This document shows positions 6,943 through 12,951 of a stretch of 64,000 bases of DNA, piece after piece. The stretch is from the IMG/VR virus record IMGVR_UViG_3300049460_000312, positions 1-64,000 of that record. One strand, given 5' to 3'. Position numbers and translations under genes: made by a program. The notes beneath the pieces are model-generated. The model made no database searches. It was not told the origin of the DNA and was given only the letters and a program-made list of their open reading frames with translations. Every line of letters starts with the position of its first letter. Within the stretch, counting starts at the first letter, position 1.

Positions 6943-6977
6943 AGCATAAAGGCCAGGGTTGCCCCCGGCCTTTATTT
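6943..6977. terminator. Intrinsic terminator hairpin with TTTATGC tail
   Basis: ATAAAGGCCAGGG-TTGC-CCCCGGCCTTTAT. Confidence 0.75.
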
Positions 6978-7210
6978 CAGAAGAAGCCGCAATTCTGAGT
7001 TTTGTCGAGCAATGACACAGCATCTTCGACGAGAAGCTCGGGATGCAGCTGATATGCAATCACCAAATGACGAATGTGGCGTTCAGTAGTCTCTTCGTCC
7101 CAGTGAGGTGCTGATGGAAAGCGCGCCATCACTATCCGTTTGGCCAGTTTCTCGAACTCTTCGTACGGAAACTGAACTGGTCTGAACGGCACCGACTTAG
7201 GGGAGCTCAT
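6977..7210 (-). CDS. Small hypothetical protein
   Basis: Within ORF 6977..7312; likely start at 7210, overlapping the TAXI gene stop. Confidence 0.55.
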   Translation of the reverse strand: MSSPKSVPFRPVQFPYEEFEKLAKRIVMARFPSAPHWDEETTERHIRHLVIAYQLHPELLVEDAVSLLDKTQNCGFF

Positions 7211-8126
7211 ACCAAGCCCAGCCGCCGTGGTTCGAAGCGTCGACTTCTTGCCACTTCGGATGCGTGCCCGTCTTGTCCTGGATATTGCCGAGCTTCGCGT
7301 CGAAACATGCACGCATGTTCTTCAGCTTGCCGATCATTTCCTGCGAACGGTAGACACGCGTCACGAGCAACGCTTGCGTCGCTACCGACTGCACCCCCGA
7401 GGCGTTCAGATTCTGATACGAGAGCTTCGCGGGGAAGTACAGCTTCGAGGCCGACAGCTTGGTCACGAGGTCTTGCGGAATCGGCAGAATCTTGAATGCA
7501 GGCGGGAGCGCCTTGACCAGACCATGCGGGGCACCGCCAACGACGAGGATCGCATCGAGGTCACCCGAGAGCAGTTTCGTCTTGAGCGTTTCATTGTCCG
7601 CCACCGGCAGCACTTTGAAACCGAGTCCCGAGTTCGCTGCCACGACATTGGCCGAAGCAATCGAGCCACCCACGGCGCCGACGTTACGACCCTTCAGATC
7701 AGCGAGCGTATTGAACGTTACCGCAGTGCCACCGACATTGAAACCGGCCACCGAGAGGCCGCCTTCCTTCTTGACGTCAGCGCGGGCAATGAAGTGCAGT
7801 TCTTCCGGATGGAGCGCGATCAGCGTCTTGATATTGGCGACCTTCGAGGCGTCGACACGGCGTTCGAATTCGAGCATGTCCGATTGCACGATCGCAGCAT
7901 TCACCTGATTGCCGATCAGCAGCGTCTTGTTGTCGATGCCGCCCTTCGTTTCGCGTTCGACCCAGTCGCCGTTGCCGCACATCTGGTTGAGTTCGCCGAA
8001 CATCACGCTGTACGTCGAGCCGCCTTTCTTGTCACCCGTGGCGACGATGATCTTCTCCTGCGCGACGGCATTCAAGCAGATTGCCACAGCGATCATCGCC
8101 AGGATGGATTTGAACAGATTTTTCAC
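7197..8126 (-). CDS. TAXI-family (TRAP) solute-binding protein with signal peptide
   Basis: Signal peptide MKNLFKSILAMIAVAICLNAVA; IVATG..GGSTY, ETKGGIDN..LL, AAIVQSD, ALHPEELHFIAR, TLADLKGRNVG are typical TAXI motifs. Confidence 0.88.
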   Translation of the reverse strand: MKNLFKSILAMIAVAICLNAVAQEKIIVATGDKKGGSTYSVMFGELNQMCGNGDWVERETKGGIDNKTLLIGNQVNAAIVQSDMLEFERRVDASKVANIKTLIALHPEELHFIARADVKKEGGLSVAGFNVGGTAVTFNTLADLKGRNVGAVGGSIASANVVAANSGLGFKVLPVADNETLKTKLLSGDLDAILVVGGAPHGLVKALPPAFKILPIPQDLVTKLSASKLYFPAKLSYQNLNASGVQSVATQALLVTRVYRSQEMIGKLKNMRACFDAKLGNIQDKTGTHPKWQEVDASNHGGWAWYELP

Positions 8127-8156
8127 TTCTTTTTCCTTCGAGTTATGGTGAGGTAA

Positions 8157-8315
8157 TTACAGCTTGAAATTCGAACTGCTGCCCGACTCGCTCGACGGCT
8201 GAGCTTCGGTTGCTGCAGGTGCAGCGTCCGTCGGCGCTGGTGACTTGTTGGTCACGAAGTACAGGGCGCCGAGGATGACGAACATCGCGACACCACCAAT
8301 GATACTGGCTTTCAT
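8157..8315 (-). CDS. Small single-pass membrane protein (52 aa)
   Basis: Below the ORF-track cutoff; MKASIIGGVAMFVILGALYFVTNKSPAPT...FKL; ATGA overlap with the upstream gene and AAGGAG RBS. Confidence 0.75.
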   Translation of the reverse strand: MKASIIGGVAMFVILGALYFVTNKSPAPTDAAPAATEAQPSSESGSSSNFKL

Positions 8316-9064
8316 GCGAGCTCCTTCACGGGTTCGAGAATACTGCCCAATTGCACACGGCCGTCCGGGGTGTACGTGACCTGGTGTGTCGACGTCGACG
8401 TTTTGATCTGTTCCTTCGCGTACGACTCATCGGTGAGCGCCATGCGCAGATGCGCCAGCGACTGGGCGTGCTCGCGATCGATCTTGTCGAAGGCGATCGA
8501 TTCCTTGAACTTGGCCATCACGTCACTGCCCGAGTTCAGTGCCTTGCCGGTTGCGTTACCCAGCTGCGCCAGCTCGTACTTGGCGATGTACTTGTCGACG
8601 TTGCGGCTGAACGCTGCATGCTTCTCGCGGGAGTCCTTGAACTGGTCGACACGGAATACGAGCAGCGCTTCGTATTCTTTCAGCGTCTGCATCGATTCTT
8701 CGGCTTCTTCCGGATACTGCTTGACGAGTTTCTTCGTCTTCTGACTGAAGAGTTCCACGGCGGCGACCTGTTGTTCCAGCATGCCACGTGCATCTTCCAG
8801 TGCTTGTGCCCGTTCCTGACGCTGGGCGATCAGGGTGGCGCAGGGATCACGCTCCACGACTTCCTTCACAGCCTTGTACTTCAGGTTCGTGAGCCACGTG
8901 GAAAAGGCTGGCTGCAAAGCCAGGGCGACACTGCCAACAACAAAGGCAGCGATCAGGCCAATCAACCCTTGAATGACCAGAAAGATCGTGGGGGCAACCA
9001 CAACCGCAACTCCTCCAGCGATCCCGACCTGTATCAGTCGTTTAAATCTTTGTTTTTTGTCCAT
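8312..9064 (-). CDS. Membrane-anchored coiled-coil protein, PspA/IM30-like
   Basis: Two N-terminal hydrophobic helices, then DP..TL......ALEDAR..L and a long coiled coil resembling PspA. Confidence 0.6.
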   Translation of the reverse strand: MDKKQRFKRLIQVGIAGGVAVVVAPTIFLVIQGLIGLIAAFVVGSVALALQPAFSTWLTNLKYKAVKEVVERDPCATLIAQRQERAQALEDARGMLEQQVAAVELFSQKTKKLVKQYPEEAEESMQTLKEYEALLVFRVDQFKDSREKHAAFSRNVDKYIAKYELAQLGNATGKALNSGSDVMAKFKESIAFDKIDREHAQSLAHLRMALTDESYAKEQIKTSTSTHQVTYTPDGRVQLGSILEPVKELA

Positions 9065-9230
9065 GATAACGGATGATAGGTTAGTGGATTGAGCGTACTC
9101 TACTCAAACCATCCCTGAGGTCTGTTAAAAACTAATACACCGGCAAAAAAAGAGAAGGTGCTGGCCGAAGCCAGCGCGACTCGGCACGGAGGAGTAGTGT
9201 GCCTTATCCCTTCTCAAAGGGAGAACGGTA

Positions 9231-9596
9231 TTACACTTGCGGGTCAATCAGAAACTTCAAGCCCGGCGTACGCATGGCTTCTTCCAGGGTCATGTTCGTA
9301 TTGACACCCATCGAACGCAGCACGCGCCACATCTCGCCACGCTCCACCTCTTCTTCCGTGGCTGCATCATCTACCCACTTTTCTACTACCGTCTCAACCG
9401 TGACTTTGGTGCCAAACACCACACGCCCATTACAGTGCTCACAGTTCACCTGACGCATCGGGTCGATCAGACGTTCGATCACTTCTTCTGGTGCACTGGC
9501 GAGCGAGTAGATGCGGTAGGTGCCAACAGCGCCGACCTGTTCGGTCGTTTCACGATTGCAATGCGGGCAATCAAACTTGACGGTATCGTAAGCCAC
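9231..9596 (-). CDS. Zn-ribbon protein
   Basis: CPHC and CEHC pairs; GTG start with AGGAG RBS. Confidence 0.8.
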   Translation of the reverse strand: MAYDTVKFDCPHCNRETTEQVGAVGTYRIYSLASAPEEVIERLIDPMRQVNCEHCNGRVVFGTKVTVETVVEKWVDDAATEEEVERGEMWRVLRSMGVNTNMTLEEAMRTPGLKFLIDPQV

Positions 9597-9632: not shown

Positions 9633-10106
9633 CTACGAGCACAGCTGGACAATCGCCACGCCGTAACGATTGAGCGCACTGCGCTGCTGGTTCTGCTGTT
9701 CCATCTGACGCTCTAGCGCAACCATACTGTTCATGGCGGACAGCGTATCGGTATCCACCAGCTTCGCATCCAGATCATGCAGATACTTAGTGGCAGCTTC
9801 TTCCGTCACAAACATCCGGCTGTACATAGCGTACTGCTCAAAGTCCGGTCCCACACCGACACTCGCACACGAGATGCAATGGCGCCGACGCGCCGTCGCG
9901 ATGCTGTACTCGGTCACCGTGTGAAACACAAACGTCCAAAGACGACCACCGCGTTGGGTGATCGCTTTATACGGGCGCCCTGCCAGGGTAGCACGCACTG
10001 GCGCGAGCGCGTGGATCTGACCCGCGTACTTCAATGCCGCTACCATCCAAACTACCCGGCCCTGCCGAATATCTTCAAACTTTAACTTACCCGCCTTTGT
10101 CGGCAT
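9633..10106 (-). CDS. Hypothetical protein
   Basis: 157 aa ORF with AAGGA RBS. Confidence 0.75.
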   Translation of the reverse strand: MPTKAGKLKFEDIRQGRVVWMVAALKYAGQIHALAPVRATLAGRPYKAITQRGGRLWTFVFHTVTEYSIATARRRHCISCASVGVGPDFEQYAMYSRMFVTEEAATKYLHDLDAKLVDTDTLSAMNSMVALERQMEQQNQQRSALNRYGVAIVQLCS

Positions 10107-12069: not shown

Positions 12070-12333
12070 ATGAAATTCGAACTCGAACTTATCGACGGCT
12101 GGAAGAAGTTCTATTCCATGTACTCGATCTGGTTTTTTGCTGCGCTCGGTAGTCTGCCGGACCTTTTCAATCTCGCCATTCAAAACGGCTTGATCACGAG
12201 CGCTAGCGCTCCCGAACTGCTCACCCGCGCAATCAATCTCGTTGCGTTCGTGGGCGCGGCTTCCCGCCTGGTGAAACAGAAGGCGCTGGCTGCTGAACAA
12301 ACGGCTGAACCGCCAGCCGGTTCCGCAAACTAA
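12070..12333 (+). CDS. Putative holin (two TM helices)
   Basis: LIDGWKKFYSMYSIW...RLVKQ pattern typical of a small phage holin family; GGAG RBS. Confidence 0.65.
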   Translation: MKFELELIDGWKKFYSMYSIWFFAALGSLPDLFNLAIQNGLITSASAPELLTRAINLVAFVGAASRLVKQKALAAEQTAEPPAGSAN

Positions 12334-12339
12334 AGCGGT

Positions 12340-12375
12340 GGAAGAGGGGCTTTGGCTCCTCTTCCTTTTATGCCG
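12340..12375 (+). terminator. Terminator with TTTTATGCCG tail
   Basis: GGAAGAGGGGC-TTTG-GCTCCTCTTCC-TTTTATGCCG between convergent genes. Confidence 0.85.
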
Positions 12376-12376
12376 C

Positions 12377-12757
12377 TCAGGCTTGTTTGTTAATGCGTTC
12401 CTGCATCTCTGTCAGCTGATCAAGCAGAAATGGACTTGCCTTGCGCAGTTCGAGCAACGGCAGCGTGGCAAAGTACACAGTGAAATCGTTACGGTAATGC
12501 GGGTCTTTGTAGGCCGTCGGAAACGTGTCGCGCGGGAAAGCCCTTTCCTGGACATCGCGCGGTAATAGTCGAGACATATCCCGCATTGTCCGGGTGACAA
12601 TCGCGGCTACTCGGCTCGGGCTGAGATCAAACCGCTCGGCCACCACTTTGTACGACAGGCCTTCCATCACTTGCTTGGTGACAGCGATCCGACGTTCCAT
12701 ATTCGGTCCTTTACGCAGATGCTGCCAAGCTCTTTCATCAAACAAACATTCTGGCAC
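12377..12757 (-). CDS. HTH protein (sigma-region-4-like), paralogue 1 of 3
   Basis: RIAVTKQVMEGLSYKVVAERFDLSPSRVAAIV; GTG start with GGAGG RBS. Confidence 0.8.
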   Translation of the reverse strand: MPECLFDERAWQHLRKGPNMERRIAVTKQVMEGLSYKVVAERFDLSPSRVAAIVTRTMRDMSRLLPRDVQERAFPRDTFPTAYKDPHYRNDFTVYFATLPLLELRKASPFLLDQLTEMQERINKQA

Positions 12758-12765
12758 ACTACCTC

Positions 12766-12951
12766 CTAACGAGCTGTACGAGAATCAAATACGTGCGAGA
12801 CTCGTGACTCTGGTGTCTGCACAAAACCTGTAGGGCTGTCGGAAAGTTCTAAGAGGTCAGCAATCACGTAAACGAACAAACAAAAGAAGCCTACGCGAAG
12901 GACCATTTTAAGTCTGCGGCGCGTGCGGCGACGAACCCGATACGGCTTCAT
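12766..12951 (-). CDS. Small Arg-rich single-pass membrane protein
   Basis: MKPYRVRRRTRRRLK followed by a hydrophobic segment; AAGGA RBS. Confidence 0.6.
   Translation of the reverse strand: MKPYRVRRRTRRRLKMVLRVGFFCLFVYVIADLLELSDSPTGFVQTPESRVSHVFDSRTAR

Follow-up and report, generated by a model that had tools for sequence, protein, structure and literature searches.

A three-gene module with a TAXI-fold binding protein, kept together in large phages and possibly a split envelope receptor

Our analysis concerns three adjacent minus-strand genes, here called A, B and C, of a Ralstonia jumbo phage (IMG/VR record IMGVR_UViG_3300049460_000312). The record is 283,373 bp long with direct terminal repeats; the window, meaning the whole stretch of DNA analysed, is its first 64 kb (positions 1 to 64,000), and the sequencing runs that contain it are rhizosphere and soil metagenomes. 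Our main finding is that A, B and C recur as a unit in other large phages. We tentatively propose that A is the hub of a self-contained envelope complex of the three products, which would work as a modular split receptor or tether and not as a transporter. Gene A (8312..9064, ATG start) encodes the putative inner-membrane hub protein of 250 amino acids (aa), gene B (8157..8315, ATG start) a putative single-pass adaptor of 52 aa, and gene C (7197..8126, GTG start) a predicted exported solute-binding protein of 309 aa with a TAXI fold. The three match phrog_27316 (E = 9e-70), phrog_37009 (E = 8e-18) and phrog_6856 (E = 1e-67), all of unknown function in PHROG, and C also matches Pfam NMT1_3. Both A and C occur once in the 283-kb phage genome. 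The DNA at 7000-9300 shares 86% identity with FLC1-1B and FLC4-3B, two jumbo phages of Ralstonia, and 69% with RP12 and RP31 (Ripduovirus). In FLC1-1B and RP12 the homologues of A, B and C are all annotated as hypothetical proteins. This includes the small gene, which an original prediction made from the sequence alone had called unannotated, and which appears as gp206 in FLC1-1B and as ORF194 in RP12.

The evidence that carries this finding is the conservation of the gene order. After removal of near-duplicates we were left with 36 non-redundant loci with A, and in all 28 that hold a homologue of C the genes follow each other as A-B-C on the same strand. Because this order recurs in every one of these loci, the arrangement is far beyond chance. 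The synteny persists down to 26% identity in C and 17% in A. Within the 28 loci B lies directly upstream of C in 26 and beside A in two. The original prediction would have lost its footing if the three genes failed to co-occur in other phages; they co-occur wherever C is found. Searches with hidden Markov models of A and C gave a similar picture: of 27 loci, 26 had A upstream and in the same orientation, and only RsoM2USA, with a C-like protein of just 24% identity, did not. The triad is present in Ripduovirus, Mieseafarmvirus (phiRSL1), Moturavirus (Achromobacter phage Motura) and metagenomic phage contigs of up to 524 kb. On these contigs the C homologues (44-54% identity) are each preceded by genes for proteins of about 250 and about 55 aa, and the same arrangement is seen on 18 IMG/VR contigs. 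Pairwise identities of A and of C are moderately correlated (r = 0.48).

The genes are also tightly packed. In our phage the TGA stop codon of A (8314-8312) and the ATG of B (8315-8313) share an ATGA overlap, which suggests that B is translationally coupled to A; a 4-nucleotide (nt) overlap of this kind occurs in 16 of the 36 loci. B has its own Shine-Dalgarno sequence (GAAGGAG, 8327-8321), and so does C (AAGGA, about 8 nt 5' of the GTG). The genes around the triad are a different matter. Among 92 flanking proteins surveyed with Pfam no family recurs, in that none turns up in more than two loci, and there is no carrier or permease. Without a recurrent neighbour, the module travels independently. 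In the literature we found no description of the A-B-C triad, of the B motif discussed below, or of the partner swapping and the fusions that we report.

The small protein B consists of an N-terminal transmembrane helix (residues 3-22), a low-complexity linker rich in Ser, Pro, Ala and Glu that is predicted to be periplasmic, and a C-terminal motif. In our phage this motif is SNFKL (residues 48-52; 8160..8174, minus strand), a hydrophobic-basic-hydrophobic pattern. Across the family it takes the form [LFMIY][KRGSN][LIMVFK] at or near the C-terminus, with variants such as NFKL, GYKL, LKIN, FKMN, LGK and similar. Every one of the 28 loci with C has it, and it is absent from all six loci that pair A and B with a different secreted protein, called D below, where the tail of B has a Q/N-rich end. 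We infer from this association that the motif is a docking site for C.

Protein C is a divergent binding protein with the TAXI fold; the original prediction had already assigned it to TAXI. It passes the gathering score of Pfam NMT1_3 (PF16868; 31 versus 27 bits) and stays below the cut-off of NCBIfam TIGR02122 for TAXI proteins (51.7 versus 84.35 bits). Its AlphaFold2 (AF2) model, built with 44 homologues, has a mean predicted local distance difference test score (pLDDT) of 93.9. When this model is searched against the PDB with Foldseek, the seven best matches are all TAXI proteins (4ddd, 9ibo, 9ibp, 8s4j, 1us4 and 8u79; E = 9e-16 to 2e-14), and the next class of binding proteins is six orders of magnitude weaker (E = 2e-9). 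The solved TAXI structures superpose on C with template-modelling scores (TM-scores) of 0.59-0.68 at 16-19% identity. A profile of the C family also finds TtGluBP (1us4, E = 2.5e-10) and VcGluP (E = 7.9e-9) among PDB sequences. Residues 1-22 (8061..8126, minus strand) read in translation as a Sec-type signal peptide, MKNLFKSILAMIAVAICLNAVA, that would be cut before QE, and all members of the C family that we inspected have comparable cleavable N-termini.

The ligand site of C is largely retained. In VcGluP the ligand residues are Y45, Q93, H123/E125 and G156/D157 (PMC11574862). In a profile alignment with 8s4j and 1us4 their equivalents in C are Y39, Q81, H106/E108 and G154/S155, of which Y39, E108 and G154/S155 are invariant in the phage family. 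At position S75 our phage has Gly and most family members have Ser. The alignment as a whole has a mean column identity of 47% and 17 invariant positions. Because the site residues are retained, C looks like a working receptor, predicted from its sequence to bind an amino-acid-like ligand. The combination of this amino-acid-type site with a LysM-containing variant of the module (see below) leads us to guess at cell-wall-derived ligands, such as free meso-diaminopimelate or D-isoglutamate ends. We also considered C as a degenerate relic that no longer binds anything, and dropped this idea given its high conservation and the intact site residues.

With the TAXI binding proteins of TRAP transporters (TtGluBP 1US4/8U79, VcGluP 8S4J/9IBO and Ehrlichia 4DDD), C shares the two-lobe type II fold, export, and the Tyr, Gln, His-x-Glu and Gly-Ser positions. 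It differs from them in its low identity and sub-threshold TIGR02122 score, an insertion of about 14 residues at about 121-136, and a pair of invariant cysteines (C50 and C274). Also, C never adjoins a fused DctQM permease and always adjoins A and B. The family is almost confined to large phages: a single-pattern scan of 185,579 bacterial and archaeal species genomes yielded 3 distant relatives (27% identity).

The claim that the window lacks a DctQM membrane subunit extends to the entire phage. Neither DctM/DctQM (PF06808) nor an ABC permease (BPD_transp_1, PF00528) is found in the 283,373-bp genome, and in the 36 related loci no permease or multi-transmembrane carrier lies beside C, the sole exception being an unrelated ModB-like gene of RP12. 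The triad, co-inherited and without a permease in its genome, is a phage module and not a transporter operon, as had been predicted. The exception in RP12 and RP31 is a ModA-like binding protein (SBP_bac_11, E = 3e-19) with a ModB-like permease (BPD_transp_1), located directly downstream of C (L010:4993-6518; ORF192 and ORF191 of RP12 in L002). The permease is thus paired with a binding protein of its own; no ATPase gene is seen beside the two genes. They may be a molybdate or sulfate uptake pair tied to the MoaA-like gene reported for RP12.

One could also argue that C does serve transport, with a carrier that the host provides. Under this explanation C is secreted and passes an amino-acid-like nutrient, such as glutamate or glutamine, to the host, either to a QM permease of the TAXI type or to a different secondary carrier. 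Uptake would rise over the long infection cycle of the jumbo phage, and A and B would be accessories or have nothing to do with it. A precedent is the cyanophage protein PstS, which boosts phosphate uptake. The TAXI fold and the glutamate-site residues of C fit this explanation, and the importer next to the RP12 triad indicates that transport genes are not foreign to the region. Of 61 sampled Burkholderiales genomes, 20 have canonical TAXI proteins above the cut-off (200-390 bits), which makes a carrier from the host possible for C. Pairing of TAXI proteins with carriers of more than one kind is also known, and they may use membrane partners outside TRAP and may be membrane-tethered, as in TAXI-GltS (PMC12344293). 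In Bordetella pertussis (BP0403), TAXI-GltS resembles the triad in that a TAXI protein lacking the TRAP membrane component is anchored at the membrane and coupled to another kind of membrane partner, and that the pairing was found through synteny and natural fusions (PMC12344293). The difference is that its partner is a multi-transmembrane Na+/glutamate symporter (PMC12344293), whereas the partners in the triad have three transmembrane helices in total and no carrier fold.

We nevertheless consider nutrient uptake unlikely, for the following reasons. First, C is far from the TAXI proteins of potential hosts, with 51.7 bits on TIGR02122 against their 200-390 and with only 16-19% identity to solved TAXI proteins. 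Second, C keeps its 47% mean column identity across phages of two host genera and many metagenomic phages. If the hosts of the metagenomic phages are diverse, conservation of this kind would favour a partner encoded by the phage. Third, C is never found without A and B. Fourth, A also pairs with exported proteins other than transport receptors, to which we now turn.

Our collection of A-based loci comprised 23 viral loci and two more, and B and C are present in about half of the non-redundant ones. Six A loci instead carry a B-like micro-protein and the secreted protein D (about 350 aa), mostly together with a further protein, E (about 185 aa). D is beta-rich with an unknown fold, carries a signal peptide in its stand-alone form, and has no match in Pfam or PHROG. 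Modules with D lie downstream of A in loci L064, L067, L069, L079, L086, L041 and L068, and the D motif reads FIKGTMDIKFNT. E is a small 8-stranded outer-membrane beta-barrel (Atlas feature score 0.96, TM-score 0.65-0.76). Locus L068 combines both sets in the order A-D-E-B-C. In locus L073 A is followed by a single protein that joins a B-like transmembrane anchor, a low-complexity linker, an SBP_bac_3 domain and LysM. A tree of A requires about 6 changes in the presence of C, and well-supported branches force at least two of them; for example, L067 groups as the sister of L068, and L073 as the sister of the group of L074, L077 and L081. Hence, A is a constant hub whose partners have been exchanged repeatedly.

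Natural fusions tell a similar story. Two proteins, P0248 (567 aa) and P0204 (574 aa), contain A, a third transmembrane helix and then a D domain in one chain, and residues 255-574 of P0204 are 43% identical to the stand-alone secreted D (E = 8e-85). We argue from these fusions that hub and partner act together. The SBP_bac_3-LysM protein likewise has anchor, linker and binding protein all in one chain. In locus L039 a 61-aa lipoprotein (lipobox LFTGC) comes after an A-D fusion. In cells A is rare, with one strong match among 401 sampled Pseudomonadota genomes. This bacterial homologue lies among ordinary cellular genes and is followed by an anchored SBP_bac_3-LysM protein that is 54% identical to its viral counterpart. 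PADLOC identified nothing for A, B, C, D or E.

Protein A itself belongs to a large family. An exhaustive HMMER search gave at least 349 representative clusters at 50% identity, nearly all with proteins of about 250 aa that match end to end; a separate search with an A profile for homologous proteins returned only 3 proteins. The names of cluster members for ten A representatives were empty or junk, such as "chromosome segregation ATPase". The AF2 model, from an alignment of 60 sequences, is all helical (pLDDT 89.8), with a membrane hairpin (3-30 and 34-72) followed by helices 74-116, 118-175, 192-211 and 213-222. Hydropathy and alignment place a Gly/Ala/Val-rich transmembrane hairpin at residues ~10-54 (8903..9037, minus strand), with its first helix at ~10-31 and its second at ~33-54; two prolines in it, P25 and P52, are near-invariant in the family. 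Residues 73-222 (8399..8848, minus strand) form an elongated three-helix bundle in the model, predicted to be cytoplasmic. The bundle starts at P74, an invariant residue in the family motif E-A-x-x-N-P-I-E-T-L, which is DPCATL in our phage, and residues 73-93, within the all-helical region, read DPCATLIAQRQERAQALEDAR. Because of five K/R at the N-terminus, we predict an N-in/C-in topology. The same follows from the fusions P0204 and P0248, in which a third transmembrane helix separates A from D: they would put the A bundle in the cytoplasm and the partner in the periplasm. A spanin identity was dropped given the cytoplasmic helical domain of A and the lack of a lipobox in B.

We favour a split receptor as the simplest fit because it accommodates the synteny, the association of the B motif with C, the fusions and the retained ligand site. 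Under this model A would be held in the inner membrane by its two-helix hairpin and would extend its elongated three-helix bundle into the cytoplasm. B, synthesised alongside A, would pack against the A hairpin as a single-pass adaptor, and its flexible periplasmic tail would keep C at the membrane through the short end motif. C would act as a periplasmic Venus-flytrap protein that binds a small amino-acid-like ligand. Closure on this ligand could be relayed through B and the membrane helices to the A bundle, which would provide the output by changing its assembly state or its partners. Possible outputs are lysis timing, exclusion of a second phage and membrane stabilisation. The contacts between A and B and between B and C, the ligand class, the signal transfer and the physiological output are all inferred.

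TAXI-GltS is a precedent for this model too, with a tethered TAXI protein that works with a membrane partner outside TRAP (PMC12344293). The model also has parallels among binding-protein-dependent sensors. In LuxP-LuxQ, TorT-TorS and MBP-Tar, periplasmic binding proteins signal their ligand to a membrane partner. The likeness lies in a periplasmic Venus-flytrap protein that reports to a membrane protein whose cytoplasmic domain is helical. Unlike these membrane partners, A lacks a domain for docking in the periplasm as well as any HAMP, kinase or MCP domain. The triad also interposes a separate micro-protein, and we detected no homology to these systems.

Several observations weigh against a split receptor. 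The association of the B motif with C could be due to co-inheritance instead of binding. The amino-acid site retained in C suits nutrient uptake equally well. A has no recognisable signalling or enzymatic domain, and its periplasmic loop comprises only about 2 residues; any coupling must therefore go through B or the membrane helices. Our calls of topology and signal peptides are based on hydropathy, charge and the fusions. A complex prediction of A, mature C and B scored 0.00, which the tool rates as no answer either way; B was folded without an alignment, and this probably made the test less sensitive. Finally, a search for expression data on the locus found none, and no RNA run is listed for it.

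The split receptor can be extended to the whole A family, with more doubt. It is possible that phages have a so far undescribed class of envelope systems that share A as their hub in the inner membrane. In these, exchangeable exported modules would be joined to the cytoplasmic bundle as effector through a micro-protein adaptor or by fusion. These modules would be the TAXI protein, the peptidoglycan-bound SBP_bac_3-LysM protein, and the periplasm-spanning beta-rich protein with its outer-membrane barrel.

A different role for A follows from the label "PspA-like" given to it in the original prediction. A would then be a membrane-anchored polymer of the PspA/ESCRT-III type that guards the inner membrane from depolarisation during infection, with B and C as regulators. 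The label found no significant match by Pfam, profile-profile or fold search. The PspA family model PF04012 does not match A at E ≤0.1 or any protein of the phage genome at E ≤0.01, and it matches one of 60 members of the A family (E = 1.2e-3). Aligned by hhalign to 18 genuine proteobacterial PspA proteins, the A family obtains a probability of 2.2% (P = 0.022) and a score of 22.7, slightly higher than the 13.8-17.5 of reversed-sequence decoys (P = 0.13-0.32). In this alignment the N-P-I-E-T-L of A is in register with the EDPxKL of PspA. Hence, the DP..TL motif that had been noticed in A does have a counterpart in PspA, and this argues for the rival; the membership in PspA that it was taken to indicate is not supported.

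Fold comparisons gave no significant match either. With Foldseek, neither PspA nor Vipp1 is in the PDB top 50 or in the Swiss-Prot top 30 for A. The best PDB match has E = 0.085, with BAR-type bundles first; among Swiss-Prot models IncA comes first (E = 0.067). ESCRT-III proteins appear at noise level (Vps24 and CdvB3, E = 0.2-0.4), and such tools discriminate helical folds poorly. In a comparison by VIA-align with 48,161 chains, Z was 10.7 for the SipB coiled coil, 8-9 for BAR domains and 7.4 (rank 41) for closed CdvB, all under the tool's own meaningful level for helical bundles. A shape search of the ESM Atlas with A gave TM-scores <0.3, and the A profile against PDB sequences only coiled-coil noise. 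The hairpin and bundle of A do have the layout of Chlamydia IncA, which combines a bilobed hydrophobic hairpin with a cytosolic helical bundle. This is an analogy only: IncA, BAR domains and the SipB/IpaB coiled coil score at chance level for helical bundles and have no sequence relation to A.

Some results do favour PspA. CdvB and Vps24 are among the weak fold matches just named. The best match in the clustered AlphaFold database (27% identity, TM-score 0.67) is auto-named "PspA/IM30 family protein"; this entry is itself likely a member of the A family. A language-model search with A led to a viral Atlas cluster, 36% of whose members have PF04012, at a weak feature score of 0.73. A preprint of October 2026 describes PspA genes, annotated by fold, in huge phages, and binding proteins are among their neighbours in 10 and 15 cases (bioRxiv 10.64898/2026.10.24.761521). 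Its PspA set may contain members of the A family by way of the auto-named entry; the triad and the partner swapping are absent from its description. Like PspA, IM30 and Vipp1, A is all helical and membrane-associated, and an E/D-P-x-x-L motif opens its first long helix. It differs in that a transmembrane hairpin takes the place of the N-terminal amphipathic helix that PspA needs. The long helices of A are also shorter than those of PspA. Membership of A in PspA/IM30 is thus not demonstrated; the sequences leave room for a distant kinship, which may exist, and a PspA-like polymer seems to us rather improbable. PspA labels that are attached to such phage proteins by automatic or fold-based transfer fail when tested, which calls for caution.

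A role in lysis timing is very unlikely. A would be a holin- or pinholin-like protein with two transmembrane helices and a large cytoplasmic regulatory domain, and B and C a periplasmic sensor that delays or triggers the holes, as in T4 lysis inhibition. The Gly/Ala-rich N-in/C-in hairpin of A does resemble pinholin helices. The candidate endolysin of the phage has a signal- or SAR-like segment and no holin gene next to it, which leaves the depolarising trigger to be accounted for. Of the features of a class II holin A has the hairpin, but neither the size nor the linkage to an endolysin: it has 250 aa, 190 of them cytoplasmic, compared with less than about 150 aa in known holins, and the candidate endolysin lies about 21 kb from the triad. 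In addition, a holin Pfam model matches just one of 60 A-family members (E = 0.005), cell-wall hydrolases are sporadic near the module (2 of 92 neighbours), and a bacterium carries an A homologue among ordinary cellular genes. The candidate endolysin, outside the window at ~269,157-269,798 on the minus strand (L095:1288-1929), is a 213-aa SLT protein whose hydrophobic N-terminus (…LLSAFAYA|DPSP) looks like a signal peptide or a signal-anchor-release (SAR) sequence; there is no obvious holin or spanin gene beside it. We treat its location and the missing adjacent holin as neutral, neither for nor against a role in lysis timing. A second SLT domain lies in an open frame of 2515 aa at ~157.8 kb, which is probably a virion protein.

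Superinfection exclusion, in which tethered C would intercept the ejection machinery of an incoming phage or released cell-wall fragments and A would block DNA entry, finds a resembling layout in T4 Imm/Sp and the Ltp lipoprotein (an inner-membrane protein plus a periplasmic protein on a Ser-rich tether) and a pointer to peptidoglycan in the LysM variant. We give it hardly any credence: the proteins show no relation in sequence or fold to known exclusion proteins, PADLOC and PHROG pointed to none, and a retained small-molecule site in C is unexpected for a role in blocking proteins.

The surroundings of the triad vary between phages. In phiRSL1 three genes (L007:2576-3701, ORF097-ORF099) part A (ORF096) from B and C (ORF100-101); they encode two small transmembrane proteins (51 and 99 aa) and one protein of 225 aa that weakly matches Lar-like restriction alleviation proteins (phrog_599, E = 3e-4). 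In one phage clade small genes are likewise inserted between A and B-C (L013:3198-3809, L017:2937-3778 and L025:3229-3779), encoding a 64-70-aa zinc-ribbon protein with four Cys and one to three tandem mini-proteins of 41-42 aa that end in ALLSHLNRG. Metabolic genes are often found a few kb or less from the triad: NMN adenylyltransferase/Nudix and PncB in phiRSL1 (L007:5398-8453), homospermidine and glutathionylspermidine synthases in Motura (L008:4959-7784), and arginase and TerF/TerC-like genes in locus L004 (8504-9370 and ~12167-12924). From these three loci we had suspected a fixed link to nicotinamide adenine dinucleotide (NAD) salvage or polyamine genes, and dropped it after the survey of 92 flanking proteins. 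We treat these genes as the usual accessory-gene neighbourhood.

In the window itself, a weak terminator-like hairpin at 9160..9175 (minus strand) was found by consensus scan only, between A and the upstream gene that ends at 9231. It may be the 5' boundary of the A-B-C unit; our confidence in it is low because its tail is T-poor. A scan for sigma-70 promoters at the locus found nothing, which carries little weight since these phages use their own RNA polymerases. The gene upstream of A (9231-9596) encodes a zinc-ribbon-like protein with two CxxC pairs. The gene after it, two upstream of A (9633-10106, minus strand), encodes a 157-aa protein that passes Pfam Phage_g100 (PF23772; 30.8 versus 27 bits). 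On the other side, a 111-aa open reading frame with a GTG start (6977-7312, minus strand) overlaps the 3' end of C by 116 nt. At the matching place FLC1-1B has gp204, with 75 aa and an overlap with the C gene of only 14 nt; the true start of the frame in our phage probably lies further downstream.

Hundreds of the genes in jumbo phages have no known function, and little is understood about how these phages handle the envelope of their host during long infections. The triad is one of the few sets of such genes that is kept as a unit across unrelated large phages, from cultured phages of Ralstonia and Achromobacter to metagenomic phages of 0.5 Mb. Because several carriers are in culture (phiRSL1, RP12/RP31, FLC1-1B/FLC4-3B and Motura), knock-outs and biochemistry are feasible. 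If the split receptor is real, C would be the first TAXI binding protein that is used without any carrier. If A is indeed a common hub, then large phages would read the host envelope, be it free amino acids, cell-wall fragments or contact with the outer membrane, and would respond by remodelling or gating the inner membrane. Known transporters, two-component systems, Psp systems and lysis cassettes would offer no counterpart to such a system.

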